The notes: a model not told the origin generated them from the letters alone. Shown: positions 1 to 12,938, counted from the first letter of the stretch. The stretch is DNA of 12,938 bases from Epithemia pelagica (GCA_946965045.2 CAMPTO020000006.1:1-12938), one strand, 5' to 3'. Numbers and translations: made by a program.

Positions 1-50
1 GAAGCAAAAAAACCCACACAACAACAGCAGAAGTTTAGAACCACATTCAG

Positions 51-87
51 ACCCTGACCCAACTCCAACAAGGGGCCCCTGTCTTGT
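51..87 (+). promoter_or_regulatory. 37-nt upstream element (Pol III-class), copy 1, upstream of U6
   Basis: ACCCTGACCCAACTCCAACAAGGGGCCCCTGTCTTGT; 32/37 identical to copies 3 and 4; ends 24-25 nt before U6. Confidence 0.8.
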
Positions 88-111
88 CAACCACCTTGTG
101 CATATATACTG

Positions 112-215
112 GACCCCAGAAATGGGACATCCGTTAAAATTGGATCGATACAGAGAAGATTAGCATGGTCCCTGCGCAAGGATGACACGCATTAATCGAG
201 AAAGTATCAACTTTT
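112..215 (+). ncRNA. U6: U6 snRNA
   Basis: ACAGAGA box 150-156, AGC triad 162-164, ISL GGTCCCTGCGCAAGGATGAC, T9 at 212-220; the 3' CGAGAAAGTAT pairs 10/11 with the U2 5' end; 5' end +/-1. Confidence 0.98.
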
Positions 216-387
216 TTTTTGTCCCCCGGATCACACGTATTTTTTACACTGGTGTCTTCTTCATGCTTCCCAGACCAACACATATGTGCAGACATACCCA
301 TCACCCACAGGTGGCAAGTGGCAGGCTGCAGTAACCCATTGAAATATTGGTTTCAAAAAACGACCATATGCTTTATGCTACTGGCAT

Positions 388-397
388 GCTTCCCTGA
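388..397 (+). promoter_or_regulatory. -48 snRNA-type upstream element of SL RNA copy 1
   Basis: GCTTCCCTGA, 47-48 nt upstream of the SL 5' end; same motif and spacing as U2/U3/U4/U5. Confidence 0.75.
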
Positions 398-434
398 GCA
401 TATACATGTCGAAAGCTGTGTAGAGAAAAAGAGC

Positions 435-546
435 AACCAACGATTTCTAAAGCTACAGTTTCTGTACTTCATTGGTATGGAAGCATGAAGATTACTCTTC
501 TCACACAACTTTGTCAAAACATGGCCGGTTTCGAAAGAGACTGGCC
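435..546 (+). ncRNA. Spliced-leader (SL) RNA, copy 1 (exon 435-474, donor GTATGG at 475)
   Basis: AACCAACGATTTCTAAAGCTACAGTTTCTGTACTTCATTG|GTATG carries the kinetoplastid/diplonemid CAGTTTCTGTACT..ATTG|GTATG core; GAAGA/TCTTC hairpin, Sm-like AACTTTG, GAAA-tetraloop 3' hairpin, T6 at 547-552. Confidence 0.95.
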
Positions 547-639
547 TTTTTTACGTTAGCATGATTGTCTTTGTGTGTCTTTGTGCAAAGCAAAAAAAAA
601 ACACACACAAGAAGTGAGGATCTTCAAAACCACGTTTTT

Positions 640-676
640 GACCTGACCCACCTCCAACTAGACAACCCTGTCTTGT
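640..676 (+). promoter_or_regulatory. 37-nt upstream element, copy 2, upstream of 7SL
   Basis: 34/37 identical to copies 3 and 4; ends 25-26 nt before the SRP RNA. Confidence 0.8.
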
Positions 677-701
677 ATTCCGACAATATGGTATCTATTG
701 A

Positions 702-1013
702 GCCGGGATGTGTTGGCTGCATCCTGAAACCCCTAGCTTCTGGGGGGGCAAGCTTCTCCAGAACTGGGCACTCTTTGAGGTGGACCAAAGGCACCTTCAA
801 CTTCTGTGTTGATGTGTTGTCCGTGTTAGTCTACTGTCCTGTTTGCGGCCTTGGTGTAAACCAGGGCAACAATCAGAGTGAAATGGGGTGAACCGGGCCA
901 GGCTGGTCTCACAGAGCAGCTCATAACTCCTGCAGTGGACAGTTCAAGGATCGCAGCACAGAGCAGAGTGAGGGTGTTTCCAACTCAATGGCTTGAACTG
1001 GAGAAGCGTTTCT
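702..1013 (+). ncRNA. SRP (7SL) RNA
   Basis: Alu-like 5' GCCGGG; helix 6 GCCTTGGT-GTAA-ACCAGGGC (848-867); helix 8 with CAGG (899-902) and AGCAG (915-919); GCTTCTCCAG/CTGGAGAAGC long-range helix; T6 at 1013-1018. Confidence 0.92.
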
Positions 1014-1176
1014 TTTTTACATTTTTCCATGTGAACATTGTTTCCACATCACCATACACATGTGTTGTTGATACACCCCACCACGTTGCCCAGACCATTC
1101 CTACCCACATTATTCACCACAAGTGGCATGTTTACCAGCACATGTTGGTGCTTAGAGCAATGTTAAGAAAAAGGGC

Positions 1177-1289
1177 AACCAACGATTTCTAAAGCTACAG
1201 TTTCTGTACTTCATTGGTATGGAAGCATGAAGATTATATTCTTCTCACACAACTTTGTCAAACATGGCCAGCCTCGAAAGAGACTGGCC
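1177..1289 (+). ncRNA. Spliced-leader (SL) RNA, copy 2 (exon 1177-1216)
   Basis: Exon identical to copy 1; intron part differs in the stem-II loop and stem III; T6 at 1290-1295; -48 motif is degenerate (GTTTACCAGC, 1130-1139). Confidence 0.93.
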
Positions 1290-1361
1290 TTTTTTACGTC
1301 ACCATGAGAAAAAAACATTCACACATATGATGCATGTACAAAGTGCACAGGTGTGTGTGTC

Positions 1362-1398
1362 ACCCTGACCCACCTCCAACAAGACAACCCTGTCTTGT
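1362..1398 (+). promoter_or_regulatory. 37-nt upstream element, copy 3
   Basis: ACCCTGACCCACCTCCAACAAGACAACCCTGTCTTGT; identical to copy 4. Confidence 0.8.
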
Positions 1399-1421
1399 TT
1401 TCCCATACTCTCCCTATGTTT

Positions 1422-1742
1422 GGGTGCTAAGTTAGTGTGCTACTTCGAAACCAAACAACTCGTTCAGCAACAGCTAAAACTTGAAAAGACCTTTCTTATC
1501 AGAAAATTCTTTACAATTTTTATGATGTGTCCTGCTGTGGCCTGATATGGCCCAAGGCGGAACCACTTTCATATGATGTAAATCCCGTACGTTCGTACAG
1601 AATATTACCCATGATGATTATTCTTACATTAGCGTGTAACACTAATTCTGACTGCGTTCTATTTCACACTTCAAATATTAGAACTGGATGTGGGGCTGCC
1701 AGTTTACTGGTGGTCCCGATCCAGCACACAACGCAAGCACCC
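1422..1742 (+). ncRNA. Orphan ~320-nt structured Pol III-class RNA, vault RNA-like candidate
   Basis: Starts 24 nt after the 37-nt element; GGGTGCT (1422-1428) pairs with AGCACCC (1736-1742); second stem GTT(A)GTGTGCT/AGCACACAAC; TACTTCGA at 1441-1448; T6 at 1743-1748. An RNA is likely; its identity is tentative. Confidence 0.65.
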
Positions 1743-1814
1743 TTTTTTATATTACCCCACCCAGTACCCCCCCTGTGTCTGTGTTGTTGCCTAAAAAAGC
1801 ATCACCTTTTACAG

Positions 1815-1824
1815 GCTTCCTTGT
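1815..1824 (+). promoter_or_regulatory. -48 snRNA-type element of an orphan small RNA
   Basis: GCTTCCTTGT; +48 lands on A1863. Confidence 0.5.
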
Positions 1825-1862
1825 GGGGAGTGTTCGGTCAAGTGATAGTGATGAAGAAGGAC

Positions 1863-1927
1863 AGGGGCGAGTTTTCTCGTGAAATGCTTTGAAGCCTCTG
1901 ACATTGAGAGGCTCGCTCCGACCTCTG
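1863..1927 (+). ncRNA. Orphan ~65-nt snRNA-class RNA candidate
   Basis: -48 motif; GGGGCGAG (1864-1871)/CTCGCTCC (1912-1919) stem; AGCCTCT/AGAGGCT hairpin (1893-1913); GTTTTTAA 3' signal like that of U3. Confidence 0.5.
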
Positions 1928-1957
1928 TTTTTAATAACCCTTACCGGTAACCACTGT

Positions 1958-1990
1958 GTATGTATGGTATGTATGGTATGTATGATATGT
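1958..1990. repeat. GTATGTATG microsatellite (3 units plus a degenerate unit)
   Basis: Direct reading. Confidence 0.85.
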
Positions 1991-2025
1991 TGCCTTTGTG
2001 TGTTTGTTTTTGTTTTGTTAAAAAA

Positions 2026-2215
2026 GAGGGTATGCCACTCCTGGATGTTGTGCAGCTCCAGGGCAACATGTGTGAACGGACCAGGTTGCCCTGGCGACCC
2101 GTCACCCCAATGAGAAATTGCGTTAATATCATCAGTGCACAAGGCACTGTATCAGATATTAAGCTGATAAGAACAGATAATACACTTGATCTTAGCCAAA
2201 AGGCCGAGAAGGTAT
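2026..2215 (-). ncRNA. U2: U2 snRNA
   Basis: Reverse complement begins ATACCTTCTCGGCCTTTTGGCTAAGATCAAGTGTATTATCTGTTCTTATCAG; stems IIa/IIb, III and IV present; ~190 nt; T6 follows. Confidence 0.97.
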
Positions 2216-2253
2216 GACTTCTTTTTAGTCCATACCAAATTCGACACCCATGT

Positions 2254-2263
2254 ACAGGGAAGC
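2254..2263 (-). promoter_or_regulatory. -48 element of U2
   Basis: GCTTCCCTGT exactly 48 nt upstream of 2215; near-duplicate at 2311-2330. Confidence 0.8.
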
Positions 2264-2364
2264 ATGATGATGATCAATATTACTAGGAAACAACAAGGCA
2301 AACAGATTACACACCCATGTCACAGGGAAGTGAGCGAAGGTGATGATCAATCGTAGTAAAAACA

Positions 2365-2507
2365 AGGCCGCCGAAGCAGCTACACAAATTGCCAATGTGG
2401 CAACGCCGAAGCGGCCCATGGCGGGAATTGGGTAGTTTTCAACCAGCAATCTCTCCACAGCGTCCCTATTTGGTCATTGCTTATGGAATTATCCCGAGCG
2501 CAAGAAT
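2365..2507 (-). ncRNA. U4: U4 snRNA
   Basis: 5' ATTCTTGCGC pairs with U6 GCGCAAGGAT; TTGCTGGTTGAAAAC (stem I); CCCGCCATG; Sm AATTTGTG; 3' GCTGC-TTCG-GCGGC; T5 follows. Confidence 0.96.
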
Positions 2508-2545
2508 ACCTCCTTTTCTCCCAGTCGTGTCACAAAGCTATGTCA

Positions 2546-2555
2546 ACAGGGAAGC
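2546..2555 (-). promoter_or_regulatory. -48 element of U4
   Basis: GCTTCCCTGT exactly 48 nt upstream of 2507. Confidence 0.8.
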
Positions 2556-2620
2556 GTGTTGGGGTGGTAACATAAAGACACCACGTAAAGCTAACACACC
2601 AGAACTACCACCACCAATGT

Positions 2621-2630
2621 GCCTCCCTGT
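2621..2630 (+). promoter_or_regulatory. -48 element of U3
   Basis: GCCTCCCTGT exactly 48 nt upstream of 2669. Confidence 0.8.
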
Positions 2631-2668
2631 AGACATCTGTGCAGCCGATAGGTGGAACAAACAAGGGC

Positions 2669-2878
2669 AAGACTGTACTCTACACAGGATCTGTTTTTGA
2701 GTGCATTCGTGTTGAAGATTGTTTTCTTCGGCACAAGACCAAAGCTGGATGATGACATAGGTTGGGCATGTGCAGCATGAGCACTTGCGATGATTGTCAC
2801 ATACTTCTTGTATTGTTTTGTCTCTCCCCTGTATGGCGCAGGGAAGAGTACCAGGCACAGCCCTTCCACTTACAGCTT
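2669..2878 (+). ncRNA. U3: U3 snoRNA
   Basis: 5' AAGACTGTACTC..AGGATC (GAC/A'/A boxes); C' GATGATGA at 2748-2755; B/C CATGAG..GATGA at 2776-2793; terminal stem AAGCTG/CAGCTT; 210 nt; T5 follows. Confidence 0.9.
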
Positions 2879-2980
2879 GTTTTTAAGAAAAACCTCAAAA
2901 AAGGCTTCACATTACTTTTTTCACCTTCAAGGACATCTTGATCAATCAAGAAGTTACCACACTATCCTCGCTCTCAACAT

Positions 2981-2990
2981 GCTTCCATGT
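2981..2990 (+). promoter_or_regulatory. -48 element of U5
   Basis: GCTTCCATGT exactly 48 nt upstream of 3029. Confidence 0.75.
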
Positions 2991-3028
2991 GTAGCAAAGT
3001 GCATACAGCAATAGAACAAAACAGAGCC

Positions 3029-3138
3029 ATATCACGGTTCTTGCCCATATCGAACTCATCTTTCGCCTTTTACTAAAGATGACCGTGGGTAAGAGCCACT
3101 AAGTGAAAGCATAATTTTTGAAGGGGCCTTTGTGTCTC
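3029..3138 (+). ncRNA. U5: U5 snRNA
   Basis: Loop 1 GCCTTTTAC (3065-3073) in an ATCTTT/AAAGAT stem; Sm AATTTTTG at 3113-3120; short 3' hairpin. Confidence 0.96.
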
Positions 3139-3166
3139 ATCTGTTTTAAGTCTTGACAACCACTAC

Positions 3167-3176
3167 GCTTCCCTGA
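3167..3176 (+). promoter_or_regulatory. -48 element of U1
   Basis: GCTTCCCTGA; +48 predicts a start at 3215. Confidence 0.7.
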
Positions 3177-3214
3177 AGGTGTTGGAGTTTCGCATGTTGT
3201 TAAACTCAGCTAGA

Positions 3215-3375
3215 GGTTACATACCTTACTGGTGTCTGACCTGATCAACAAGGGCGTCGACACACCAGTGGCCCTTGCATTGCACTGCGCAGGGGATACT
3301 GGTGGCACTAGCTTCGGCTGGCTTGCACAGTGAAATTTTTGACAGCGGCGGTGCTGTGCTTTGCACAAACCCGCC
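3215..3375 (+). ncRNA. U1: U1 snRNA
   Basis: ACATACCT at 3219-3226; helix H ACTG/CAGT (3228-3231/3328-3331); 70K-like loop GATCAACAAG; U1A loop ATTGCACTGC; Sm AAATTTTTG at 3333-3341; GGCGG/CCGCC stem IV; 5' end 3214-3217. Confidence 0.93.
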
Positions 3376-3598
3376 TTTTTAAACAAACAAACCAAAACAA
3401 ACGTGATCACACAAACCATCATGTTACCCAGTAAACCCAGTAAACCCAGCACACTGGTCTAGAGGGATCGACCACTGAGTGGTGACCTGTGAGCACACAG
3501 GCACCTGCTCCGATGCAGTAGTGCAGCGCACTAAGTGCTGTGCTAAGGACTGGCCAAACTTGTTAAACCTGCTGACCCACAAACCGGTTTTCACAACC

Positions 3599-3643
3599 GA
3601 AGCAAAAACAAGCTCAGAAATAAAAAGCTCTTCAAAGGTTTTC
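3599..3643 (+). repeat. 45-nt block upstream of 5S copy 1
   Basis: Identical to 4354-4398; both end 17 nt before the 5S gene. Confidence 0.85.
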
Positions 3644-3660
3644 GAACCTGACTCAGTATT

Positions 3661-3780
3661 GGATTCGGCCATACTCTGGTGAATACACCTCATCCCGCCT
3701 GATTTGAGAAGTTAAGCACCAGCAGGCCTGGATAGTACTGGCGTGGGTGACCAGCTGGGAAGTCCGGGTGCTTGAATCCT
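3661..3780 (+). rRNA. 5S rRNA, copy 1
   Basis: GGATTCGGCCATAC...GAAGTTAAGC...TAGTACT...GGGAAGTCC...GAATCC; helix I GGATTC/GAATCC; T-run follows. Confidence 0.98.
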
Positions 3781-3824
3781 TTTTGCTTTTCTTCCGTGTT
3801 GGTGTGTGGTTTTAGGACATCCAG

Positions 3825-3861
3825 ACCCTGACCCACCTCCAACAAGACAACCCTGTCTTGT
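3825..3861 (+). promoter_or_regulatory. 37-nt upstream element, copy 4
   Basis: 37/37 identical to copy 3; no known RNA gene downstream. Confidence 0.8.
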
Positions 3862-3885
3862 ATCCCTGTGTTTGTTGCACTATCC

Positions 3886-4262
3886 AGAGAGCAGAAATGA
3901 GGGGAGACTACACCACCGACGGTGCTTCAGCCTACAGGAGCATGCTGGAATGTGAATGCTGCATGACAGCATTCACAATTTCACCTTTGGTGAGATGGAG
4001 ATGAGCGCAAAGGTGCAAAAATGCACAACAAAAACTGAGGAAGAGGCATCCATACTCCCCAGAAGGGACGTGCGCACCTGCAGCCAAAAATTCTCCTGTG
4101 CTTAATATCATGCGCGCTGGGGATGCCGAAATAGCTAAACTGTTGCAAGAAGTGGGACTAATTCCCAGGCAGTTGCCCTGTACAACATGCAAGTCCACAA
4201 TGCCAGAAACACTGTACTGGACACCAAGATACTCCAAGAAGATCGCAAACTGGCCTTATTTT
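3886..4262 (+). ncRNA. Orphan Pol III-class transcript candidate (~375 nt)
   Basis: Starts 25 nt after the element; first T4 at 4259-4262; 9-bp end-closing helix 3894-3902/4254-4262; perfect 11-bp hairpin 3951-3977. Alternatively a decayed transposase (see findings). Confidence 0.4.
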
Positions 4263-4353
4263 AGGTGAAATGACCTAATGCAGAGTGCAGCGGAACAGGG
4301 GAGACAAATAAAGTTTCCTGTACCATGCAACACCCAAGACCTTTTGCACAAGT

Positions 4354-4398
4354 GAAGCAAAAACAAGCTCAGAAATAAAAAGCTCTTCAAAGGTTTTC
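4354..4398 (+). repeat. 45-nt block upstream of 5S copy 2
   Basis: Identical to 3599-3643. Confidence 0.85.
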
Positions 4399-4415
4399 CA
4401 CCCAGACCCATTATT

Positions 4416-4535
4416 GGATTCGGCCATACTCTGGTGAATACACCTCATCCCGCCTGATTTGAGAAGTTAAGCACCAGCAGGCCTGGATAGTACTGGCGTG
4501 GGTGACCAGCTGGGAAGTCCGGGTGCTTGAATCCT
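4416..4535 (+). rRNA. 5S rRNA, copy 2
   Basis: Identical to copy 1; T6 follows. Confidence 0.98.
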
Positions 4536-4617
4536 TTTTTCCTTATTTGTGGTGTAACACACAGAAGTTGGTTGAAAAGTGAACTGATAGTATTCAGCGC
4601 AAAGCATGATTATTGAA

Positions 4618-4689
4618 GGGTATATAGCTCAGTGGTAGAGCATTCGGCTGCAGTCCGAACGGTCCCTGGTTCGAACCCGGGTGTGCCCT
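4618..4689 (+). tRNA. tRNA-Cys(GCA)
   Basis: Cloverleaf; TTCGG-CTGCAGT-CCGAA; U73. Confidence 0.97.
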
Positions 4690-4790
4690 CTCTTTTTGTT
4701 TCAAGACCAGATTTTCTCTTGAGTGTTACTTCTCCCTTTTTGGTTTTGAATTCCATCCCCACCTTGTAAAGATTCGTTTAAGAAATGTAA

Positions 4791-4863
4791 GGGGGTTTAG
4801 CTCAAATGGTAGAGCGCTCGCTCAGCATGCGAGAGGTAGAGGGATCGATACCCTCAATCTCCA
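4791..4863 (+). tRNA. tRNA-Ala(AGC), C33
   Basis: CTCGC-TCAGCAT-GCGAG; G3:U70. Confidence 0.96.
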
Positions 4864-4954
4864 AACATTTTTTGGCTTGGAAACACTGTTGTGATATTTC
4901 CAGATCTCGATTCTTTTTGGTACCAAAGAAAAAGAAGGAAGCGACAGAATTGTA

Positions 4955-5026
4955 TCTCCTATGGTGTAGTGGTTAGCACTCGAGACTCTGAATCTCGCGA
5001 CCGCGGTTCGAATCCGCGTAGGAGAA
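4955..5026 (+). tRNA. tRNA-Gln(CTG)
   Basis: CGAGA-CTCTGAA-TCTCG; acceptor TCTCCTA/TAGGAGA. Confidence 0.96.
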
Positions 5027-5119
5027 CTTTCCTTTTTCTCCATTTCGTCCCTTGTTATTCTCCTCTATGACTGGTTGAAACACATTCCCACTTCCATATT
5101 CTTGTTGGCTTTTATTGAA

Positions 5120-5201
5120 GGCGAGATGGCCGAGTGGTCTAAGGCGCCAGGTTAAGGCCCTGGTCCCTTCGGGGGCGTGGGTTCAAACCCCACTCTCGTC
5201 A
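5120..5201 (+). tRNA. tRNA-Leu(AAG)
   Basis: CCAGG-TTAAGGC-CCTGG; long variable arm. Confidence 0.97.
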
Positions 5202-5290
5202 CTTGTTATTCTTTTTCATTTTCATTTTCAATCTATCCCTTTTGTTTTGTTTTCAAGATTGTGCAAAACACAAAAAGCACACTTGTCAGG

Positions 5291-5363
5291 TCCTCCTTGG
5301 CGCAGTCGGTAGCGCGTCAGGCTGTTAACCTGCAGGTCGTTGGTTCGAACCCAACAGGAGGAG
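5291..5363 (+). tRNA. tRNA-Asn(GTT), copy 1
   Basis: TCAGG-CTGTTAA-CCTGC; identical to 10735-10807. Confidence 0.96.
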
Positions 5364-5422
5364 ACTTTTTTCCCTTCTCAAACCATTTTCTGTTCTTTGC
5401 AAAAGTCATAAAAAACTGGGAA

Positions 5423-5504
5423 GGCGAGATGGCCGAGCGGTCTAAGGCGCCAGGTTTAGGCCCTGGTCTCTTCGGAGGCGTGGGTTCAAACCCCACTCTC
5501 GTCA
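5423..5504 (+). tRNA. tRNA-Leu(TAG)
   Basis: CCAGG-TTTAGGC-CCTGG; long variable arm. Confidence 0.97.
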
Positions 5505-5568
5505 CGTTATTACCATTTTTCCGCAGAAAACCCACCTCTTGTGGAAAACAGTTCCGGTCATTATTGTA

Positions 5569-5641
5569 GCAGCTATCGTCTAGTGGTTAGGACGCTCGCC
5601 TCACACGCGAGAGATCGTCGGTTCAATCCCGACTAGCTGTA
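5569..5641 (+). tRNA. tRNA-Val(CAC)
   Basis: CTCGC-CTCACAC-GCGAG. Confidence 0.97.
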
Positions 5642-5731
5642 ATTTCTTTTTGAACTTTCCTTCACATTTTCGTTCAATGCAACGATCGAAAAGATGTCCC
5701 CATGCAGATAATAGTTTTGCCTACTATCAGA

Positions 5732-5803
5732 TCCGCTGTAGTATAGTGGTTAGAACAGCCGGCTCTCACCCGGCAGACCGGGGTTCAATTCCCCGCAGCG
5801 GAA
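5732..5803 (+). tRNA. tRNA-Glu(CTC)
   Basis: GCCGG-CTCTCAC-CCGGC. Confidence 0.97.
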
Positions 5804-5897
5804 AATACCTTTTTTTAGACCAAGTTTTGGAGAGAAGAATTTCTGACTTTTGAATATTAACGCCATCATGTAAATCTGGATGAAGAAAATAATCAGT

Positions 5898-5969
5898 GGC
5901 TTAGTGGTCTAGTGGCATGATTCTCGCTTCGGGTGCGAGAGGTCCAGGGTTCGATTCCCTGCTGAGCCC
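5898..5969 (+). tRNA. tRNA-Pro(CGG)
   Basis: CTCGC-TTCGGGT-GCGAG. Confidence 0.97.
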
Positions 5970-6036
5970 CTCTTTTTATTTAGGTAGTTTCTTGCTTGGG
6001 AATTGTTTAGAAAAATTATTTCCACATCTTTTCGAC

Positions 6037-6126
6037 CACCAAAATCCCAAGATGAGGAAGTTTGGAAAAGTGCATTTTTGTGAAAGTATTTTGCCATATC
6101 TTTGTTGTCACCAAAATCCCAAGATG
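6037..6126. repeat. 18-nt direct repeat CACCAAAATCCCAAGATG (6037-6054, 6109-6126)
   Basis: Exact match, 72-nt period. Confidence 0.8.
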
Positions 6127-6183
6127 GTGAGAGAATCTTGAAAAATCATTTTCCATATTTTCACTTCCCAGTGAAAAAGAGAA

Positions 6184-6256
6184 TACCCATGGTGGGGATC
6201 GAACCCACAATCTTTCGCTTAGGAAGCGAACGCCTTATCCATTGGGCTACACGGGC
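6184..6256 (-). tRNA. tRNA-Arg(CCT)
   Basis: TTCGC-TTCCTAA-GCGAA. Confidence 0.97.
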
Positions 6257-6362
6257 CTAATAGTTTTACCTTCTTTCCTTTTCTCTGGGGTGGTCAAATT
6301 TAGGACAAGAGACTTTTCTGCATGACCACCCCACAATGATTCTTTGGTTTAAATGAATGTGA

Positions 6363-6435
6363 GCCTCCCTAGCTCAGTCGGTAGAGCGCAAGGCCCTTAA
6401 CCTTGTGGTCGCGGGTTCGAGCCCCGCGGGAGGTG
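6363..6435 (+). tRNA. tRNA-Lys(CTT), copy 1, C33
   Basis: CAAGG-CCCTTAA-CCTTG; identical to 11364-11436. Confidence 0.96.
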
Positions 6436-6701
6436 CTTTTCTTTTTGAATGTTTACGATTTTGCAGGTTTCTGAGATTTTGAGGCAAATGAAAACCAAAA
6501 AATATTTCCTCCACTTGATCTCAGTTCTGTTTCGTTGGCAAGTTGAGAGTGGAATTTGGGTGAAAATATGTGTTTTCCGAACCAACACAGGACTCCCACC
6601 GACCGGTGTAGGTTTTGCGTTCAACCAGGTGTGAACTGCTTCCACTCGCGAAAAGTGCCAGACCCTTTTGCTGGGGATAGCACGTTTCAGCCCCACAACT
6701 T

Positions 6702-7214
6702 ATCTCCTTTCTGGGCATGTCCAGTGTGCTCAGCTGCCGCTTCTTGGCGACTCACCAGTACAGAATGGTGGAATCCAGCACAGAATGGAATGGCTGGGAA
6801 ATCCTTAGCAATCCATAATTCAGATGGAAAAACTCCTGACCTGGCTATTGAATTTTCGGATCATTTTCTCAGTCACAATGCAAGCACAGAATGGAAACCA
6901 AAACCAAGCACAGAATGGAACACGGCTATAAGACTCCAGCCATTCCATTCTGTGCTGGTTTTTCGTTTCCATTCTGTGCTTGCATTGTGACTGAGAAAAT
7001 GATCTGAAAATTCAATACCCGGGTCAGGAGTTTTTTTTTCCACTCCTAACAAATCCTTACAGTAAGCCTATAAGTCTCCAGCCATTCCATTCTGTGCTGG
7101 TTTTTGGAGCCCATTCTGTGAGCACTCGCTCGGGCCTGTACTGGAGTATAGCGGCCAGGCCATCTCCCTTCTGCGTTCCTGCCTGTCACATCCAGTGCTC
7201 AGTTGCTGCTTCTT
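6702..7214. repeat. Nested foldback element: ~95-bp inverted arms 6826-6920/6943-7041, outer 23-bp IR 6775-6797/7078-7100, flanking imperfect direct repeats 6702-6745/7162-7214
   Basis: Direct comparison of arms; CAGAATGG/CCATTCTG sub-repeat occurs four times per side. Confidence 0.9.
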
Positions 7215-7255
7215 CAGCACAACCGCATCACACATCACATCACCAAAAAATAGAA

Positions 7256-7327
7256 AGGCAACTGGGGGGATCGAACCCCCGACCCTTGGTTTACAAGACC
7301 AATGCTCTGCCACTGAGCTAAATCGCC
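7256..7327 (-). tRNA. tRNA-Thr(TGT)
   Basis: TTGGT-CTTGTAA-ACCAA. Confidence 0.97.
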
Positions 7328-7409
7328 GCTGATTAAGATGCTTTTGCTGTTTCTCCTGCGAAGAAGTTTTTCAAGACAACACAGAAAGGAAAGTGTGTAA
7401 AAAAAGAAA

Positions 7410-7480
7410 TGACCCTAGACGGAATCGAACCGCCGTTGATGGATTTGGAATCCATAGTGCTACCGCTACACCATAGGGCC
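7410..7480 (-). tRNA. tRNA-Trp(CCA)
   Basis: ATGGA-TTCCAAA-TCCAT; 71 nt; A73. Confidence 0.93.
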
Positions 7481-7565
7481 CATGATTTAGGGCTTCAATG
7501 CGTTTAGCATGAAGGTGGAAATTTTGCTGAAAATCCCACACAAAGGAAAAAGACACACAAAAAAG

Positions 7566-7638
7566 TGCGAGGTGCCAGGATCGAACTGACGACCTTAGGA
7601 TTATGGGACCTACGCGCTCCCGACTGCGCCAACCTCGC
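7566..7638 (-). tRNA. tRNA-Met(CAT), elongator type, C33
   Basis: TAGGT-CCCATAA-TCCTA; U31:U39, G1-C72 and T54 indicate an elongator. Confidence 0.95.
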
Positions 7639-7762
7639 CTTGATATTATCGTATCATTAAGAAATACATGGGGTGCAAATTTCTACAGGTTTGTGTGGCA
7701 AAAAAATTTTTTTGAGCCAAAAAATTTTATGGGCTTCTGTGAAAACAATGACAGTTGTAGAA

Positions 7763-7846
7763 CCTCTCGTAGCTCAATTGGTAGAGCGCTCGACTGTAGA
7801 ATACTCGGTTATCGAGCGGTCGCTGGTTCGATTCCGGCCGAGAGGA
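7763..7846 (+). tRNA. tRNA-Tyr(GTA) with 11-nt intron (7800-7810)
   Basis: CTCGA-CTGTAG[AATACTCGGTT]A-TCGAG; 73+11 nt. Confidence 0.96.
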
Positions 7847-7923
7847 TTTTTTTCGTTTTCGTGTTCCAGATTATTTTCTGCAAACAGATGACTGCCTAAA
7901 AACAAAGAACGGTGAGAATTACA

Positions 7924-8005
7924 GCAGTCGTATCCAAGTGGTTACGGAGGTGGACTAGAAATCCATTGGGCTCTGCCCGCGCAGGTTCAAGTCCTGCCGA
8001 CTGCG
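7924..8005 (+). tRNA. tRNA-Ser(AGA)
   Basis: GTGGA-CTAGAAA-TCCAT; long variable arm; G73. Confidence 0.97.
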
Positions 8006-8103
8006 ATTCATTTTTTGTTCACGAATTTTCGTGCATTTTCGTCGTTTCTGTGCTCATTTTAGACCATTTTGATGCGCGAAATTAAATCAGAGTGAAGATT
8101 GTA

Positions 8104-8175
8104 TCCTCGGTAGTATAGAGGTCAGTATTTCCGCCTGTCACGCGGAAGACCCGGGTTCAATTCCCGGCCGGGGAA
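8104..8175 (+). tRNA. tRNA-Asp(GTC), A73
   Basis: TCCGC-CTGTCAC-GCGGA. Confidence 0.95.
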
Positions 8176-8237
8176 TTCTTTTTTGTACAGGGCTCCCACT
8201 CATTGTTTCGTTTCTTTTCTGATGAAAATCAAATCAG

Positions 8238-8310
8238 GCCCCGTTGGCGCAATGGATAGCGCGTTGGACTTCGAATCCAAAGGTTGCGGGTTCGAGTCCC
8301 GCACGGGGTT
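8238..8310 (+). tRNA. tRNA-Arg(TCG)
   Basis: TTGGA-CTTCGAA-TCCAA. Confidence 0.97.
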
Positions 8311-8595
8311 AACTTTTTGAACATTGTTTTTTTGAACTTTTTTGAAACACAAAAAAGTGAGAGGTTGGTGTCAAATGAATTACAGTGACAAGTTACAGTC
8401 ACAACAGATAAAAACATTGGGTCCAGTGGGAAGGGGTCACCCCGGGATTTTGGATTTTTTGGTAGTCAACCCACCCATAAGAACCTTGAAAAAATTTTGG
8501 GAAAAACTTGAAAACTGGAAATTCTTTGAAAAGCTGACATTTCAGAAAAAATTTTCTGAACATGAAAATTTTGCTTCCCCCTTTAAAAAAAGAAC

Positions 8596-8667
8596 TGCAC
8601 TTACCGGGAGTCGAACCCGGGCCGCTCGCTTGGAAGGCGAGAATACTAACCGTTATACCATAAGTGC
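8596..8667 (-). tRNA. tRNA-Gly(TCC)
   Basis: CTCGC-CTTCCAA-GCGAG. Confidence 0.97.
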
Positions 8668-8756
8668 TGTTACTTTCATGCAAAGTGTTTTCTTTGTGAG
8701 GGGCGATTTCAAAATGAAAATAATTTCAAATTCTTCAAATTGCCTAAAAAAAGAAG

Positions 8757-8828
8757 CAACCGTGGCAGGACTCGAACCTGCAACCGCCTGATCCGTGGTC
8801 AGGCGCTCTTCCATTGAGCCACACGGTC
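8757..8828 (-). tRNA. tRNA-Arg(ACG), C33
   Basis: CCTGA-CCACGGA-TCAGG. Confidence 0.96.
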
Positions 8829-8917
8829 CATGTCTTTAGGCAATAGTATTTTTTATGTGGCCTGCATATTTTTGGAGTTGAAAAAAAAATTTAGACGGTT
8901 GATTGTACAGCTAAAAA

Positions 8918-8990
8918 AGCGGTTACCGAGAATTGAACTCGGGTCTCCCGTGCCACAAACGGGTGTTCTAAACCACTAAACCATAACCGC
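8918..8990 (-). tRNA. tRNA-His(GTG), U73
   Basis: CCCGT-TTGTGGC-ACGGG. Confidence 0.96.
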
Positions 8991-9106
8991 TTGAATATTC
9001 CCACTTATTGGGATCTCAGAAAGGGTTTTATTTCGAGGGATATTGTGAAATATTTTTCAACCATGCAACGAGCGGCAACTCGAGCACAATTTCGACTAAT
9101 ATCGTA

Positions 9107-9176
9107 GCGTAATTGGTCTAGTGGTAGAATGGCCCCCCGCCACGGGGTCGGCCGGGTTCGATTCCCGGATTACGCA
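9107..9176 (+). tRNA. tRNA-Gly(GCC), C33, 3-nt variable loop
   Basis: GCCCC-CCGCCAC-GGGGT; 70 nt. Confidence 0.93.
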
Positions 9177-9416
9177 CTCTCTTTTTGCGATTGACAAAAG
9201 CAAAACAATATGGTTTCGGACAGTTTCAGGTCAGTCACAAACTCGTTCAAAACGAAAAAGTGGAAATGATATGTACTCTTTCTTGTGTAAGGATTCTTAG
9301 TGGAGAAAGAAATTTTTTGTCTGATGCCGGTTTTTGCTCGACATAGTAAGTCAGTTCAGTCACAACTTCCGTCACAATCGAAAAAAAAATTTGACTCATA
9401 TGTTTATAAACCCATG

Positions 9417-9653
9417 CTGACTTACATGTTTATTTGTTCACAAAAATCCCAGTTCATAAACATGTAAGTCAGTATGGCCGCTCTGGTGGCCGCATGTTTT
9501 TGGGTTAACTTACGTGTTTATGAAAAACCTGACTTACATGTTTATTTGTTCACAAAATTCCCTGGGTTAATAACCATGTAAGTCAGGTTTTTCATAACCA
9601 TGTAAGTCAGGTTGGGACTACAACATGTTCATAAACCCAACCTGACTTACATG
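9417..9653. repeat. Array of three perfect inverted repeats built on the 12-mer CTGACTTACATG
   Basis: 17 bp 9417-9433/9456-9472; 23 bp 9518-9540/9575-9597; 18 bp 9599-9616/9636-9653. Confidence 0.92.
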
Positions 9654-9722
9654 TATATTTCTTCACAAAATTCCCAAGATATGGCCGGTGCACTGGTCAG
9701 AGACATCACGTTTGCGGGCCAA

Positions 9723-9836
9723 CCCCCCTGTGCGCCCGATTAGCTTACCCCCCTGTGCGCCCGATTAGGAATACCCCCCTGTGCGCCCGATTAGGGATCC
9801 CCCTGTGCGCCCGATTAGCTTACCCCCTGTGCGCCC
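9723..9836. repeat. GC-rich ~25-nt tandem repeat C5-6TGTGCGCCCGATTAG, 4 full units plus 1 partial
   Basis: Units at 9723, 9748, 9774, 9799 and 9823, separated by CTTA/GAATA/GGAT/CTTA. Confidence 0.93.
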
Positions 9837-9862
9837 ACCTACCTAGTCACTGTGACCAGGTG

Positions 9863-9882
9863 CCTGGTCAGATCTGACCAGG
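9863..9882. repeat. Perfect 20-bp palindrome CCTGGTCAGATCTGACCAGG
   Basis: Self-complementary; half-sites also at 9693-9701 and 9853-9860. Confidence 0.9.
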
Positions 9883-10196
9883 TACCCTTACTAATATGCC
9901 TTACCAATATGGCCAGGGGTGTGGTATGTTGGGTGCACAAGGGAGTTTCACGATGGGGGAATACATGCTGGACATGTGCCTTATCTTATGCACAGGTGCA
10001 ATGGATGGCATAGCAAACCCGTATGCCCATTGCGTGTGTGGGTTTGCTGGCCTAGGACTGTACGGAAAGTGCACGGGTCCACCACAGTACAACCAGTCAT
10101 GCACCAAGGGCAACTGGCTGTTTTATCAATTTTTGAACTTTTTTTTAGACATTGCCAAACCTTCTCCATAATCTGAGATCTTGGGAAACAAGATAA

Positions 10197-10268
10197 GCTC
10201 GCGTGGCGCAATGGAAGCGCGTCGGTTCCCGACGCCGGAGGTTGCGGGTTCGATCCCCGCCGCGAGTA
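10197..10268 (+). tRNA. tRNA-Arg(CCG), C33
   Basis: TCGGT-TCCCGAC-GCCGG; Arg-like body with D-loop AATGGAA. Confidence 0.9.
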
Positions 10269-10379
10269 CTTTTTGTTCATTCCAAAATATTTTTAGATTT
10301 CCTCCTTTGCCAAATTGAAAATTCAGAAATGCGAAAATATCAAAAAACAGCTCCGAAATTTGAAAGCAATTAAAAAGGA

Positions 10380-10451
10380 TTCCCCCTCCGGGGTTTGAAC
10401 CCGGGTCGCCTGGGTGAAAGCCAGGTATACTAACCACTGTACTAAAGGGGA
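10380..10451 (-). tRNA. tRNA-Glu(TTC)
   Basis: CCTGG-CTTTCAC-CCAGG. Confidence 0.97.
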
Positions 10452-10548
10452 GGTGATACTTAGGCACAATCCAAAAAGGGTACTTTTGTGCAAGGAACAC
10501 GGAATTTCAAACGAAAAAATAAATAAAAATGAAAATCCAAAAAGACAA

Positions 10549-10620
10549 GGGCTCGGCGGGGAATTGAACCCCGGACCTCTCGCACCCTAAGCGAGAATCA
10601 TGCCACTAGACCACCGAGCC
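10549..10620 (-). tRNA. tRNA-Pro(AGG)
   Basis: CTCGC-TTAGGGT-GCGAG. Confidence 0.97.
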
Positions 10621-10734
10621 ACGAATTCTCTCGCATTCTCTTCGTAACGCGGCCATAAGTTTCCATCATTCCTTGTGTGTGTTTTCGTTTTGAATAAGGT
10701 CCCCATGTAAATGCTGTCTTCGCTAACAATCAGA

Positions 10735-10807
10735 TCCTCCTTGGCGCAGTCGGTAGCGCGTCAGGCTGTTAACCTGCAGGTCGTTGGTTCGAACCCAACA
10801 GGAGGAG
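10735..10807 (+). tRNA. tRNA-Asn(GTT), copy 2
   Basis: Identical to 5291-5363. Confidence 0.96.
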
Positions 10808-11061
10808 ATTTTTCATTTTTTTGAGTTTTTGATTCTATTTTTGATTTTGAGCTAAAAATCCACATTGTGTGTCATCTTGATGTTGAAACTATTTTTCAGA
10901 TTTCCAAGGTTGTCTCACCAAAAAAACCAAACATCTTGAATGCTGTCCTAACTTGGAGATTGTTGACCTGAAGATAAAACAGATTTTGTCAGGTTTTTTT
11001 TTTTGAGTTTGAAAAAGTTCAGAACAGAATGAAAAAAGGGATCGATGCAGTGTATAAAAAA

Positions 11062-11143
11062 CGCGAACGGCAAGGTTCGAACTTGCGCATGCAGAGCACA
11101 CTCGCTTAGCAGGCGAGCCCCGTAACCACTTGGGTACGTCCGC
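11062..11143 (-). tRNA. tRNA-Ser(GCT)
   Basis: CTCGC-CTGCTAA-GCGAG; long variable arm. Confidence 0.97.
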
Positions 11144-11363
11144 TTAATTACCTGTCAGTACTTAGGACGAAGCTTGTACTTTGTTTAACGACACGTTAGT
11201 GATCACTTGTGTGGTCACCAAAAATCATCGCAATTGTGACCACCAAAAAAATTTTTTGGGCACGATTTCGCGCGATGGTGAGCTCATTGCACGACGGCCG
11301 ACACACCATGTTTTCCAACAAATTTAAAAAATTCCAGAAAAATTCAGGTATCAATACAAAAAG

Positions 11364-11436
11364 CACCTCCCGCGGGGCTCGAACCCGCGACCACAAGGTT
11401 AAGGGCCTTGCGCTCTACCGACTGAGCTAGGGAGGC
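11364..11436 (-). tRNA. tRNA-Lys(CTT), copy 2, C33
   Basis: Identical to 6363-6435, opposite strand. Confidence 0.96.
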
Positions 11437-11538
11437 TCATATTAACTTAAATCAAAGAATCAACGTGGGGTACTTGTGTGTACCTGCAACCACCAAATTT
11501 TCCATCGTTGTTGCGTGAACAAAAGGATCCGGATTATC

Positions 11539-11610
11539 TCTCCTATGGTGTAGTGGTTAGCACCCTGGACTTTGAATCCAGTAGCCGCGGTTCAAACCCG
11601 CGTGGGAGAA
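11539..11610 (+). tRNA. tRNA-Gln(TTG)
   Basis: CTGGA-CTTTGAA-TCCAG. Confidence 0.97.
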
Positions 11611-11724
11611 CTTTTCTTTTTCCAAGTGTTTTCAATATTTTTTGGAGCTTTGTCACACACATCTTCAATCTCTGCATTTGATGACAAAACATAGATCACA
11701 GAAATCAAACGAAAAGGTAAAGAA

Positions 11725-11806
11725 CGCTGACGGCAGGGTTCGAACCTGCGCGGGCAGAGCCCAGTGGATTTCAAGTCCACCTCCGTAACCACTTGGATAC
11801 GTCAGC
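11725..11806 (-). tRNA. tRNA-Ser(TGA)
   Basis: GTGGA-CTTGAAA-TCCAC; long variable arm. Confidence 0.97.
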
Positions 11807-11882
11807 ATAGTTGAGGAAGTACAACGCCCCAGATCCTGAAAATGAGCGCAAAAAGAGAATCCAATTGATCCAAAAAAGTAGG

Positions 11883-11954
11883 CACCCGCCGTGGGGATCG
11901 AACCCACGACCATTGGATTAAAAGTCCAACGCTCTACCGCTGAGCTAGGCGGGC
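11883..11954 (-). tRNA. tRNA-Lys(TTT)
   Basis: TTGGA-CTTTTAA-TCCAA. Confidence 0.97.
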
Positions 11955-12067
11955 ATTCGTTTTAAAGGAAAGAGTCAATTTCAAGGCTTGTTGCGTTCTT
12001 GAAAAAAACTGACAAAAAGACGAACAGAAAGTGCCCCAAGTACGTCTCCTTGAGGGACATTTATCAG

Positions 12068-12139
12068 GGGCGTTTAGCTCAGTGGTAGAGCGCCCGTTCT
12101 GCATACGGGAGGCCGAGGGTTCGAACCCCTCAATGTCCA
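12068..12139 (+). tRNA. tRNA-Ala(TGC), C33
   Basis: CCCGT-TCTGCAT-ACGGG; G3:U70. Confidence 0.96.
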
Positions 12140-12239
12140 TTTTTTTGCCTTATTTTGTTGATTATTTTTTGGTTGGGCCAGTTAACACACAAAAATATGA
12201 ACTGGCACCATTGTGCAGTGCCTGCGATGAGGATGTGTG

Positions 12240-12659
12240 TGATGGTCCAATTGGCGAGTCTGATGTCATAATGTGTTCAGGAACATCCAAATGACCCATT
12301 TTCCCAACGTTTTCACATTTTTGAGCATTTTGCTATTACGCAATAGTGGTACAATAGGCATTTTACTGGGTCATTTTAACCAACTCTATCAGGACACTTC
12401 TGATGCTCCAATTGGCGATTCTGACCTCATAATGGCTTCATGAGCAGCCGAATAACCCGTTTTCCAAATATTTTCACATTTTTGAACATTTTGCCATTCG
12501 TGGAATGGTGGCACAAAAGTCATTTTACTGGGTCATTTTCGCCAACTCGATCAGGGGACACTTCTGGTGCTCCAATTTGCGGTTCTGACCTCATAATGGA
12601 TTCAAGAGCACCCAAATAACCCATTTTCCCAACGTTTTCACATTTTTGACCATTTTGCT
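12240..12659. repeat. ~161-164-nt imperfect tandem repeat, ~2.6 copies
   Basis: CCAATT anchors at 12247, 12408 and 12572; TTTTCACATTTTTGA and CATTTTACTGGGTCATTTT recur. Confidence 0.9.
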
Positions 12660-12764
12660 GTTGCAGAGTATCAGTAAGATGAGGTCATGCAAATACAGTT
12701 TTGTGCACAACAGAAAAAAAATAGTGTGTACCCCAGGTTGGCGATTCCTTTCGTCATTATTGTC

Positions 12765-12837
12765 GGTCGTGTAGCTCAGTCGGTAGAGCATTGGTCTAAT
12801 AAGCCAACGGTCCCAGGTTCGAGCCCTGTCACGACCA
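12765..12837 (+). tRNA. tRNA-Ile(AAT)
   Basis: TTGGT-CTAATAA-GCCAA; C49:U65 mismatch in the T stem. Confidence 0.94.
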
Positions 12838-12915
12838 ATACTTTTTCTACTACTTTGACTTTGACCTGTTCAAAAAATGTTGGCCGTGTAAAAAATATGC
12901 ATACCCTAAAACAAG

Positions 12916-12938
12916 GCCTCTTTAGCTCAGTTGGGAGA
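12916..12938 (+). tRNA. 5' part of a tRNA, truncated by the window edge, probably Phe
   Basis: GCCTCTT-TA-GCTC-AGTTGGGA-GA; the D-loop is typical of eukaryotic Phe; anticodon not visible. Confidence 0.7.

Follow-up and report, generated by a model that had tools for sequence, protein, structure and literature searches.

In Diplonema papillatum (Paradiplonema), the genes of the spliced-leader (SL) RNA, the 5S ribosomal RNA (rRNA) and the U2 small nuclear RNA (snRNA) form a tandem repeat, which was called exceptional and is apparently absent in other diplonemids (PMC10161547). In trypanosomatids, clusters of 2-10 transfer RNA (tRNA) genes that also include snRNA, 7SL and U3 genes, and 5S genes in the case of Leishmania, are distributed over many loci; a 2.7-kb region of Leishmania tarentolae, for example, holds U3, 10 tRNA genes, U1 and 5S (PMC2784804, PMC12204681). 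Euglena gracilis exhibits a U3-U5 linkage and an SL-5S repeat (PMC2784804), and the SL RNA genes of Perkinsus marinus are clustered with those of U2 and U4 (PMC3101222). We analysed a stretch of 12,938 nt, one strand, from the genome assembly of the diatom Epithemia pelagica (GCA_946965045.2 CAMPTO020000006.1:1-12938), hereafter the window, in which about 47 small-RNA genes are packed into 13 kb. This small-RNA gene block is genuine and conserved, an extreme variant of the small-RNA gene clustering known from Euglenozoa.

To describe the window, we used ARAGORN for tRNA genes, Rfam at gathering scores and then at a relaxed threshold, and Pfam for open reading frames (ORFs). The first 4.6 kb contained U1, U2, U4, U5 and U6 snRNAs, the U3 small nucleolar RNA (snoRNA), the 7SL RNA of the signal recognition particle (SRP), an orphan RNA, two 5S genes and two SL RNA genes, and was followed by 33 tRNA genes (Table 1); ARAGORN found no tRNA gene within positions 1-4617. 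Annotated genes represented 37.5% of the window bases. The longest ORF reached 149 amino acids (permissive bacterial code), and ten window ORFs gave no match in Pfam. A first-pass annotation, made from the sequence alone, had described five major snRNAs, two SL RNAs, U3, 7SL, two 5S and 33 tRNA genes in a protein-free block of euglenozoan type. This content was confirmed by Rfam, ARAGORN, homologues and Pfam, and the euglenozoan type by an SL exon like that of Diplonema.

Among the non-coding RNAs, U6, 7SL, U2, U4, U5, both 5S rRNAs and the 33 tRNAs exceeded the Rfam gathering score. U1 obtained 68 bits for a cut-off of 69.5, i.e., 1.5 short (E 2e-15), and was 92% and 79% identical to its homologues in two relatives described below, namely contigs from a metagenome-assembled genome (MAG) and a metagenome contig (L001), respectively. 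Both homologues exceeded the Rfam threshold and, in L001, a single alignment spanned U5, the spacer and U1. U3 scored 35 bits on Plant_U3 at the relaxed threshold (E 2e-6, match 2669-2878), and its first 129 nt were 91-97% identical in the two relatives. The GAC, A', A, B, and C boxes of the U3 5' domain were readable, and two UGAUGA-type boxes were kept in the three species. The 3' hairpin was variable across these species, as in U3 generally, and the 3' end (window 2860-2885 and homologues) read CUUACAGCU in all three; no canonical CUGA box D was found near it. The identity of U1 is thus secured by the matching homologues in relatives, and that of U3 is supported by them. The snRNAs of the window were full-length and canonical.

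Rfam returned no SL RNA match in the window, and both SL genes were read directly. They exhibited a 40-nt exon directly followed by a GT donor, and the exon ended in both copies with the kinetoplastid/diplonemid core CAGTTTCTGTACT(N)(N)ATTG, then GT. The exon and the first intron bases were invariant in six genes from four sources. The exon opens with AACCAACGATTT, 12 nt that also begin the D. papillatum SL (supplement of the D. papillatum genome paper); among 14 euglenozoan SL types that have been tabulated, one alone opens with those twelve bases (PMC3795323). Downstream of the exon, the genes continue with a U-rich region and, in the folds, a 3' hairpin, before ending in T6; the hairpin was preserved between copies 1 and 2 despite internal changes. 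As judged from the sequence, both genes are SL RNA genes of the kinetoplastid/diplonemid type in their exon, donor, intron part and terminator. The SL genes (435 and 1177) and the 5S genes (3661 and 4416) were separated by other genes, and no short tandem repeat of alternating SL and 5S, of the euglenozoan kind with many copies of a unit of about 0.5-1 kb, was present in the window.

All 46 genes had a T-run of 4-7 T within 10 nt downstream, and small-RNA genes were found on both strands. Three promoter arrangements were distinguished. Class A is a 42-nt element with an internal 8+8 dyad, present in four copies, which end about 20 nt before the starts of U6, 7SL, the RNA at 1424 and the stretch at 3887. 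A shared element at a fixed offset before U6 and 7SL, with a T-run at the gene end, follows the pattern of genes with an external (type 3-like) promoter. To our knowledge, wherever their transcription has been studied, U6 and 7SL are made by polymerase III, and class A would therefore be an external promoter for RNA polymerase III. Class B is a box, GCTTCCCTG or a one-mismatch variant of it, located at -50 to -39 of SL copy 1, U2, U4, U3, U5, and U1 and centred near -45, which we infer to be a snRNA-type promoter; 11 matches were counted versus about 3 expected by our own arithmetic. Class C, formed by the 5S and tRNA genes, had no shared upstream box, and these genes presumably use internal promoters. 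In trypanosomatids, polymerase III transcribes the U-snRNA genes and polymerase II the SL RNA genes, and both kinds of genes end at T-runs. The block had also been proposed to be a co-regulated cassette. If this implies a shared transcript, the proposal was not upheld: the independent terminators of the 46 genes, their presence on both strands and the three promoter arrangements argue for a gene island and not for a co-transcribed cassette, and gene order varies among species. Two further observations concern the promoters. The U2 promoter segment 2255-2331 (minus strand), class B box included, is tandemly duplicated, with copies 68 nt apart. Directly upstream of U1 in L001 (L001:1066-1091), an 11-mer, GACAACCCTGT, is identical to the core of the class A element of the window; promoter modules may move between gene classes.

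The 33 tRNA genes were located between 4618 and 12837 (ARAGORN), and each of them was confirmed by Rfam. When introns were allowed, they exhibited 31 distinct anticodons and covered 19 amino acids, Phe being missing; the only duplicated anticodons were Asn-GTT and Lys-CTT. The probability of drawing at least 31 distinct anticodons in 33 draws was 7.5e-5 (200,000 simulations, 46 equally likely classes), in agreement with the nearly non-redundant set that the first-pass annotation had proposed. Its statement that almost the whole kit is present went too far, with about 31 of about 46 anticodon species represented and no initiator-type tRNA-Met recognised by eye. In the default scan, positions 7763-7846 appeared as a second Ser-AGA gene; this candidate was rejected, the gene being a tRNA-Tyr(GTA) with an 11-nt intron when introns were allowed. 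The tRNA-Cys(GCA) and tRNA-Arg(ACG) genes of the window have the ordinary, non-permuted structure. The median spacer between tRNA genes was 99 nt, and 12 of the 32 neighbouring pairs were antiparallel. The tRNA-Leu(AAG) and tRNA-Leu(TAG) genes (5117-5202 and 5420-5505, respectively) are 95% identical and probably derive from a duplication followed by an anticodon change.

To identify relatives carrying the same genes, we performed a pattern scan with the diplonemid SL signature on JGI metagenomes, which yielded three loci, and on the GTDB genome collection. The first locus, L001, is a complete 2392-bp metagenome contig with 7SL (5' cut), U3, U5, U1, U2, U4, and SL on a single strand. Its genes were 79-97% identical to those of the window and its SL exon was identical, with unalignable spacers, which indicates a different but close organism. 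L002 was the only case of an SL gene adjoining a 5S gene. L003 was rejected as an SL RNA gene, the SL exon running into downstream sequence without a GT donor. At this locus (L003:3820-3870, minus strand, contig Ga0209092_10001252), a Diplonema-like SL exon is fused to ORF-like sequence in very AT-rich surroundings, which has the look of a retro-copy of a trans-spliced mRNA, or of sequence captured by another genome.

The GTDB match consisted of contigs 9, 67, and 76 of CBDCEV01, filed under a Hyphomicrobiales MAG (L004-L010). These contigs contained a multigene unit, about 8.4 kb long and comprising no fewer than 12 kinds of genes, repeated in tandem head to tail, in the order SL, U5, U1, U3, U4, 7SL, U2, SL, U6, a homologue of the orphan RNA at 1424 (orphan RNA A), two 5S, and three to four SL. 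The SL genes of the sub-array were spaced by about 370 bp, without 5S, and each unit held about six SL genes in total. Contig_9 comprised 2.3 units, with periods of 8587 and 8297 bp and an inter-unit identity of 97.7-99.4%. The tandem repetition that the first-pass annotation had considered possible for the block holds for this relative. The MAG genes were 81-98% identical to those of the window. Common to the three species were the gene set, U5 beside U1, and U3 beside the U5-U1 pair; gene order and orientation otherwise differed among the window, L001 and the MAG species. In the latter, U6, 7SL and the homologue of the orphan RNA lay behind a different dyad, a single copy of which serves U6 and that homologue in divergent directions, and a TAA(C/G)CAACGG box preceded U1-U5 and U3; the promoter classes persist though their sequences differ. 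The similarity of this MAG box (TAACCAACGGTTT; e.g., L007:2500-2830) to the 12 nt that open the SL RNA itself, AACCAACGATTT, is close and hints at an SL 5' end doubling as a promoter-like element. The approximately 40 kb of diplonemid-type small-RNA repeats inside this species-representative 'Hyphomicrobiales bacterium' MAG (CBDCEV010000009.1, ...67.1, ...76.1) are a binning contaminant.

The SL type matched that of Diplonema and the snRNAs were full-length and canonical, which points to a diplonemid or a close relative. The D. papillatum authors stress the canonical, full-length snRNAs of Diplonema versus the reduced snRNAs of kinetoplastids. The contig very probably comes from a diplonemid-like flagellate that was a passenger in the sample, and not from the diatom. 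Eleven public runs (X1-X11), from seven studies and with at least seven organism labels, contained the window. Both window halves were present in all eleven, with a parallel ranking, and none of the window (0.00) was recovered from sibling runs that share those studies and labels. From runs of only 110-170 million letters, 70-90% of the window words were recovered. In the low-share runs X9-X11, recovery of the left (snRNA) half was about double that of the tRNA half. The assembly of a passenger's contig in the first place, the run recovery and the left-half excess would agree with many copies of the left half, for which they provide a weak indication.

Overall, the window is probably a genuine nuclear small-RNA island of a diplonemid-type euglenozoan in the diatom sample, made of independent units whose set has been kept linked and which rides in a co-amplified repeat. 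Three groups of units would be combined, namely U6, 7SL and the orphan RNA (a), SL, U1, U2, U4, U5, and U3 (b), and 5S and the tRNAs (c), each unit stopping at its own T-run. The lineage conserves the togetherness of the genes, not their order, and the genes would ride together in a co-amplified repeat that evolves concertedly. A shared repeat could provide a high and balanced dosage, notably of SL RNA, which is consumed at every trans-splicing event. Such an island might also keep promoter-bearing small genes outside the long polycistronic protein-gene units that are typical of Euglenozoa. The snRNA/SL/5S part of the window probably lies in, or borders, an array of this kind, with the near one-of-each tRNA block adjoining. 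Two SL copies, of which one has an impaired promoter box, seem too small a number unless the block, or just its left portion, is present many times or further arrays exist. Several points weigh against a co-amplified island. There was no long direct repeat between the window ends, so that, if tandem, the unit would exceed 12.9 kb or only a part would be repeated. The MAG repeat unit had no tRNA genes, and the linkage of tRNA and snRNA blocks was seen only in the window, where the apparent contiguity across the 5S/tRNA junction, near 4540-4620, is that of the assembly alone. Lastly, the promoter boxes differed in sequence across the three species, and their role is deduced from position and sharing. 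A wider version of this explanation, which we put forward only tentatively and for all its parts jointly, is that a clade of diplonemid-like flagellates carries U1, U2, U4, U5, U6, SL, U3, 7SL, 5S, and the RNA of about 300 nt on one co-amplified, ribosomal DNA (rDNA)-like repeat that is their sole source; the tRNA set would have been added in the window species, and the repeat, chromosomal or extrachromosomal, would be a second 'organiser' besides the rDNA.

The absence of an end-to-end repeat in the window would also be expected of a single-copy island, the main rival explanation, in which few, largely non-redundant small-RNA genes, like those of trypanosomatids, lie outside polycistronic units or serve one nuclear transcription/processing hub. 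The 31 anticodons in 33 tRNA genes and the single occurrence of each snRNA are in line with this, as are the tRNA clusters of Trypanosoma cruzi, which are nearly without duplicates (except tRNA-Sec) and lie together with snRNA and 7SL genes, and the polymerase-specific hubs and tRNA-tRNA contacts of Trypanosoma brucei. We nevertheless find a single-copy island doubtful: two SL genes are few for a trans-splicing organism when D. papillatum has about 110 and the MAG relative about six per 8.4-kb unit, that close relative does repeat the set, and a single-copy locus of a passenger would be unlikely to assemble or to reach a word recovery of 0.7-0.9 in small runs. A chimeric or collapsed contig joining small-RNA genes that are not neighbours would agree with the shortness of the contig, its end within a tRNA gene and the mis-joins that repeated genes invite. 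Such an artefact is nevertheless highly improbable, since two independent assemblies of relatives link the same genes within 2.4 and 8.4 kb, the duplicated genes have diverged and not collapsed flanks, and both halves turned up together, ranked in parallel, in all eleven runs, which come from seven studies. The block might also belong to the diatom itself, in whose assembly it sits, e.g., by horizontal transfer from a euglenozoan; this would duplicate the whole spliceosomal RNA set of the host under foreign promoters, and presence was specific to the sample and not to the species label, which leaves diatom ownership barely credible. A co-amplified nuclear island of a passenger euglenozoan therefore remains our preferred explanation.

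Some stretches of the window could not be assigned to a family. Orphan RNA A has conserved 5' and 3' ends that form a terminal helix. Its homologue in the MAG contigs, about 300 nt long, lies behind the U6/7SL-type dyad of that species; the internal hairpins stay paired, with 11 of the 63 predicted pairs changed on both sides, a covariation drawn from just two effectively different sequences. Neither orphan RNA A nor its MAG homologue corresponded to an Rfam family at permissive thresholds, at which nothing credible was found in 1404-1950 or 3870-4280 either. The candidate RNA of about 67 nt had no counterpart in the relatives. For the stretch 3887-4262, we found no homologue in the relatives, no Rfam match at permissive thresholds and no Pfam match. 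Other interpretations were discarded: visual inspection of the orphan regions revealed neither motifs of RNase P or MRP nor a telomerase template of the TTAGGG type, and the open frame at 4005-4265, considered as a zinc-ribbon transposase remnant, was dropped without a Pfam match.

Table 1. Small-RNA genes, promoter elements and unassigned stretches of the window, with positions counted from its first base.
Feature	Position	Strand	Evidence and remarks
Class A element before U6	51-92	+	Family D7, position
U6 snRNA	112-217	+	Rfam 93.7 bits; T-run
Class B box GCTTCCCTG before SL gene 1	388-396	+	At -47
SL RNA gene 1	435-552	+	Exon 435-474 (40 nt), GT donor at 475, 3' stem-loop, T6
Class A element before 7SL	640-681	+	Family D7, position
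7SL (SRP) RNA	702-1009	+	Rfam 129 bits
SL RNA gene 2	1177-1295	+	RNA intact; -48 box mutated
Class A element before orphan RNA A	1362-1403	+	Family D7, position
Orphan RNA A, about 320 nt	1424-1747	+	Class A element; MAG homologue; internal T5 at 1519-1523
Candidate RNA of about 67 nt (about 1864-1930)	1815-1934	+	One-mismatch class B box upstream; uncertain
U2 snRNA	2025-2215	-	Rfam 141.6 bits; class B boxes 2255-2263 and, duplicated, 2323-2331
U4 snRNA	2368-2507	-	Rfam 63.3 bits; class B box 2547-2555
U3 snoRNA	2669-2885	+	Plant_U3 weak match; homologues; class B-like box 2621-2629
U5 snRNA	3030-3140	+	Rfam 85.8 bits; class B box 2981-2989
U1 snRNA	3217-3375	+	Sub-threshold Rfam and homologues; class B box 3167-3175
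5S rRNA gene 1	3661-3780	+	Rfam 89.3 bits; 215-nt repeat family D2
Class A element (3825-3866), then about 375 nt unannotated (3887-4262) ending in T4	3825-4262	+	
5S rRNA gene 2	4416-4535	+	Rfam, above gathering score
Nine tRNAs: Cys-GCA, Ala-AGC, Gln-CTG, Leu-AAG, Asn-GTT, Leu-TAG, Val-CAC, Glu-CTC, Pro-CGG	4618-5970	+	ARAGORN, Rfam
tRNAs Arg-CCT (-), Lys-CTT (+)	6184-6436		ARAGORN, Rfam
tRNAs Thr-TGT, Trp-CCA, Met-CAT	7256-7638	-	ARAGORN, Rfam; Met-CAT elongator-like, by eye
tRNAs Tyr-GTA (11-nt intron), Ser-AGA, Asp-GTC, Arg-TCG	7763-8311	+	Intron-allowing scan
tRNAs Gly-TCC, Arg-ACG, His-GTG	8596-8991	-	ARAGORN, Rfam
tRNAs Gly-GCC, Arg-CCG	9107-9177, 10197-10269	+	1 kb of repeats in between
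tRNAs Glu-TTC, Pro-AGG	10380-10620	-	ARAGORN, Rfam
Second tRNA Asn-GTT	10735-10807	+	Family D3; flanks included, 98% identical to 5286-5369
tRNAs Ser-GCT, second Lys-CTT	11062-11436	-	Lys copy is an inverted 121-nt duplicate of 6328-6448 (pair I1)
tRNAs Gln-TTG (+), Ser-TGA (-), Lys-TTT (-), Ala-TGC (+), Ile-AAT (+)	11539-12837		ARAGORN, Rfam
34th tRNA, 5' part, truncated by window end	12916-12938	+	D-arm looks Phe-like (by eye only)

The spacers of the tRNA block also contained repeated elements. A long hairpin at 6828-7035, with arms of 93 nt that are 94% complementary and a loop of 22 nt, lies in an 819-bp gap between two tRNA genes, with a related half-copy at 7068-7120, and may be a foldback element. 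The two other large gaps of the block, at 9400-9851 and 12231-12658, were filled by three kinds of repeats: 112-nt repeats including a palindrome at 9508-9607, a 25-nt C-rich tandem repeat present five times at 9722-9851, and a 162-nt tandem repeat present three times.

A set of this kind offers a compact natural system for the dosage of SL RNA, which is consumed stoichiometrically, versus that of the catalytic snRNAs; for two external promoter classes that evolve quickly yet are shared within a genome; and for the role of a conserved orphan RNA. In practical terms, a diatom assembly carries a foreign contig, and a bacterial MAG that is a GTDB representative carries about 40 kb of eukaryotic repeats.

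In the open-access literature, we met with no description of a unit that unites all the spliceosomal snRNAs with SL, U3, 7SL, and 5S, nor of such a set beside a one-of-each tRNA block, and within that scope the arrangement appears new, as had been supposed; a 2025 snRNA survey of six diplonemid draft genomes does not mention the linkage. Karenia brevis reportedly has SL and snRNA genes in 5S spacers, according to Lidie and Van Dolah in 2007. Like Perkinsus marinus, the window links SL to spliceosomal snRNA genes in a trans-splicing lineage; Perkinsus differs by its unrelated SL family, its partial sets and the lack of 7SL, U3 or a tRNA block. As in Euglena gracilis, U3 lies directly beside U5 in the window and in L001, and beside the U5-U1 pair in the MAG contigs; in Euglena, however, U5 and U3 converge and form a stand-alone pair in many diverged copies, whereas U3 and U5 of the window have the same direction within a larger set. 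The block resembles the trypanosomatid clusters in its density, its lack of protein genes, the use of both strands, a spacing of about 100 nt, few redundant tRNAs and the adjacency of RNAs with several functions. Those clusters contain no SL RNA genes, unlike the window, and the snRNA, U3 and 7SL genes of trypanosomatids depend on the A and B boxes of a tRNA gene that lies some 95-105 bp upstream in divergent orientation. Those of the window do not; they carry their own non-tRNA boxes, and the nearest tRNA gene is more than 1 kb away. With the D. papillatum repeat, the window shares the SL family, canonical snRNAs, and the linkage of SL, 5S and snRNA genes; the MAG relative likewise repeats its unit in tandem. 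The window differs from that three-gene unit by a far larger set held in 4.6 kb, joined by 33 tRNA genes, in which SL and 5S do not alternate. Among Euglenozoa, linkage of small-RNA genes had been known for pairs and triplets and for clusters of no more than about a dozen genes; a conserved unit with the complete spliceosomal set, SL, U3, 7SL and 5S, repeated in tandem in at least one species, stands at the extreme of this trend.

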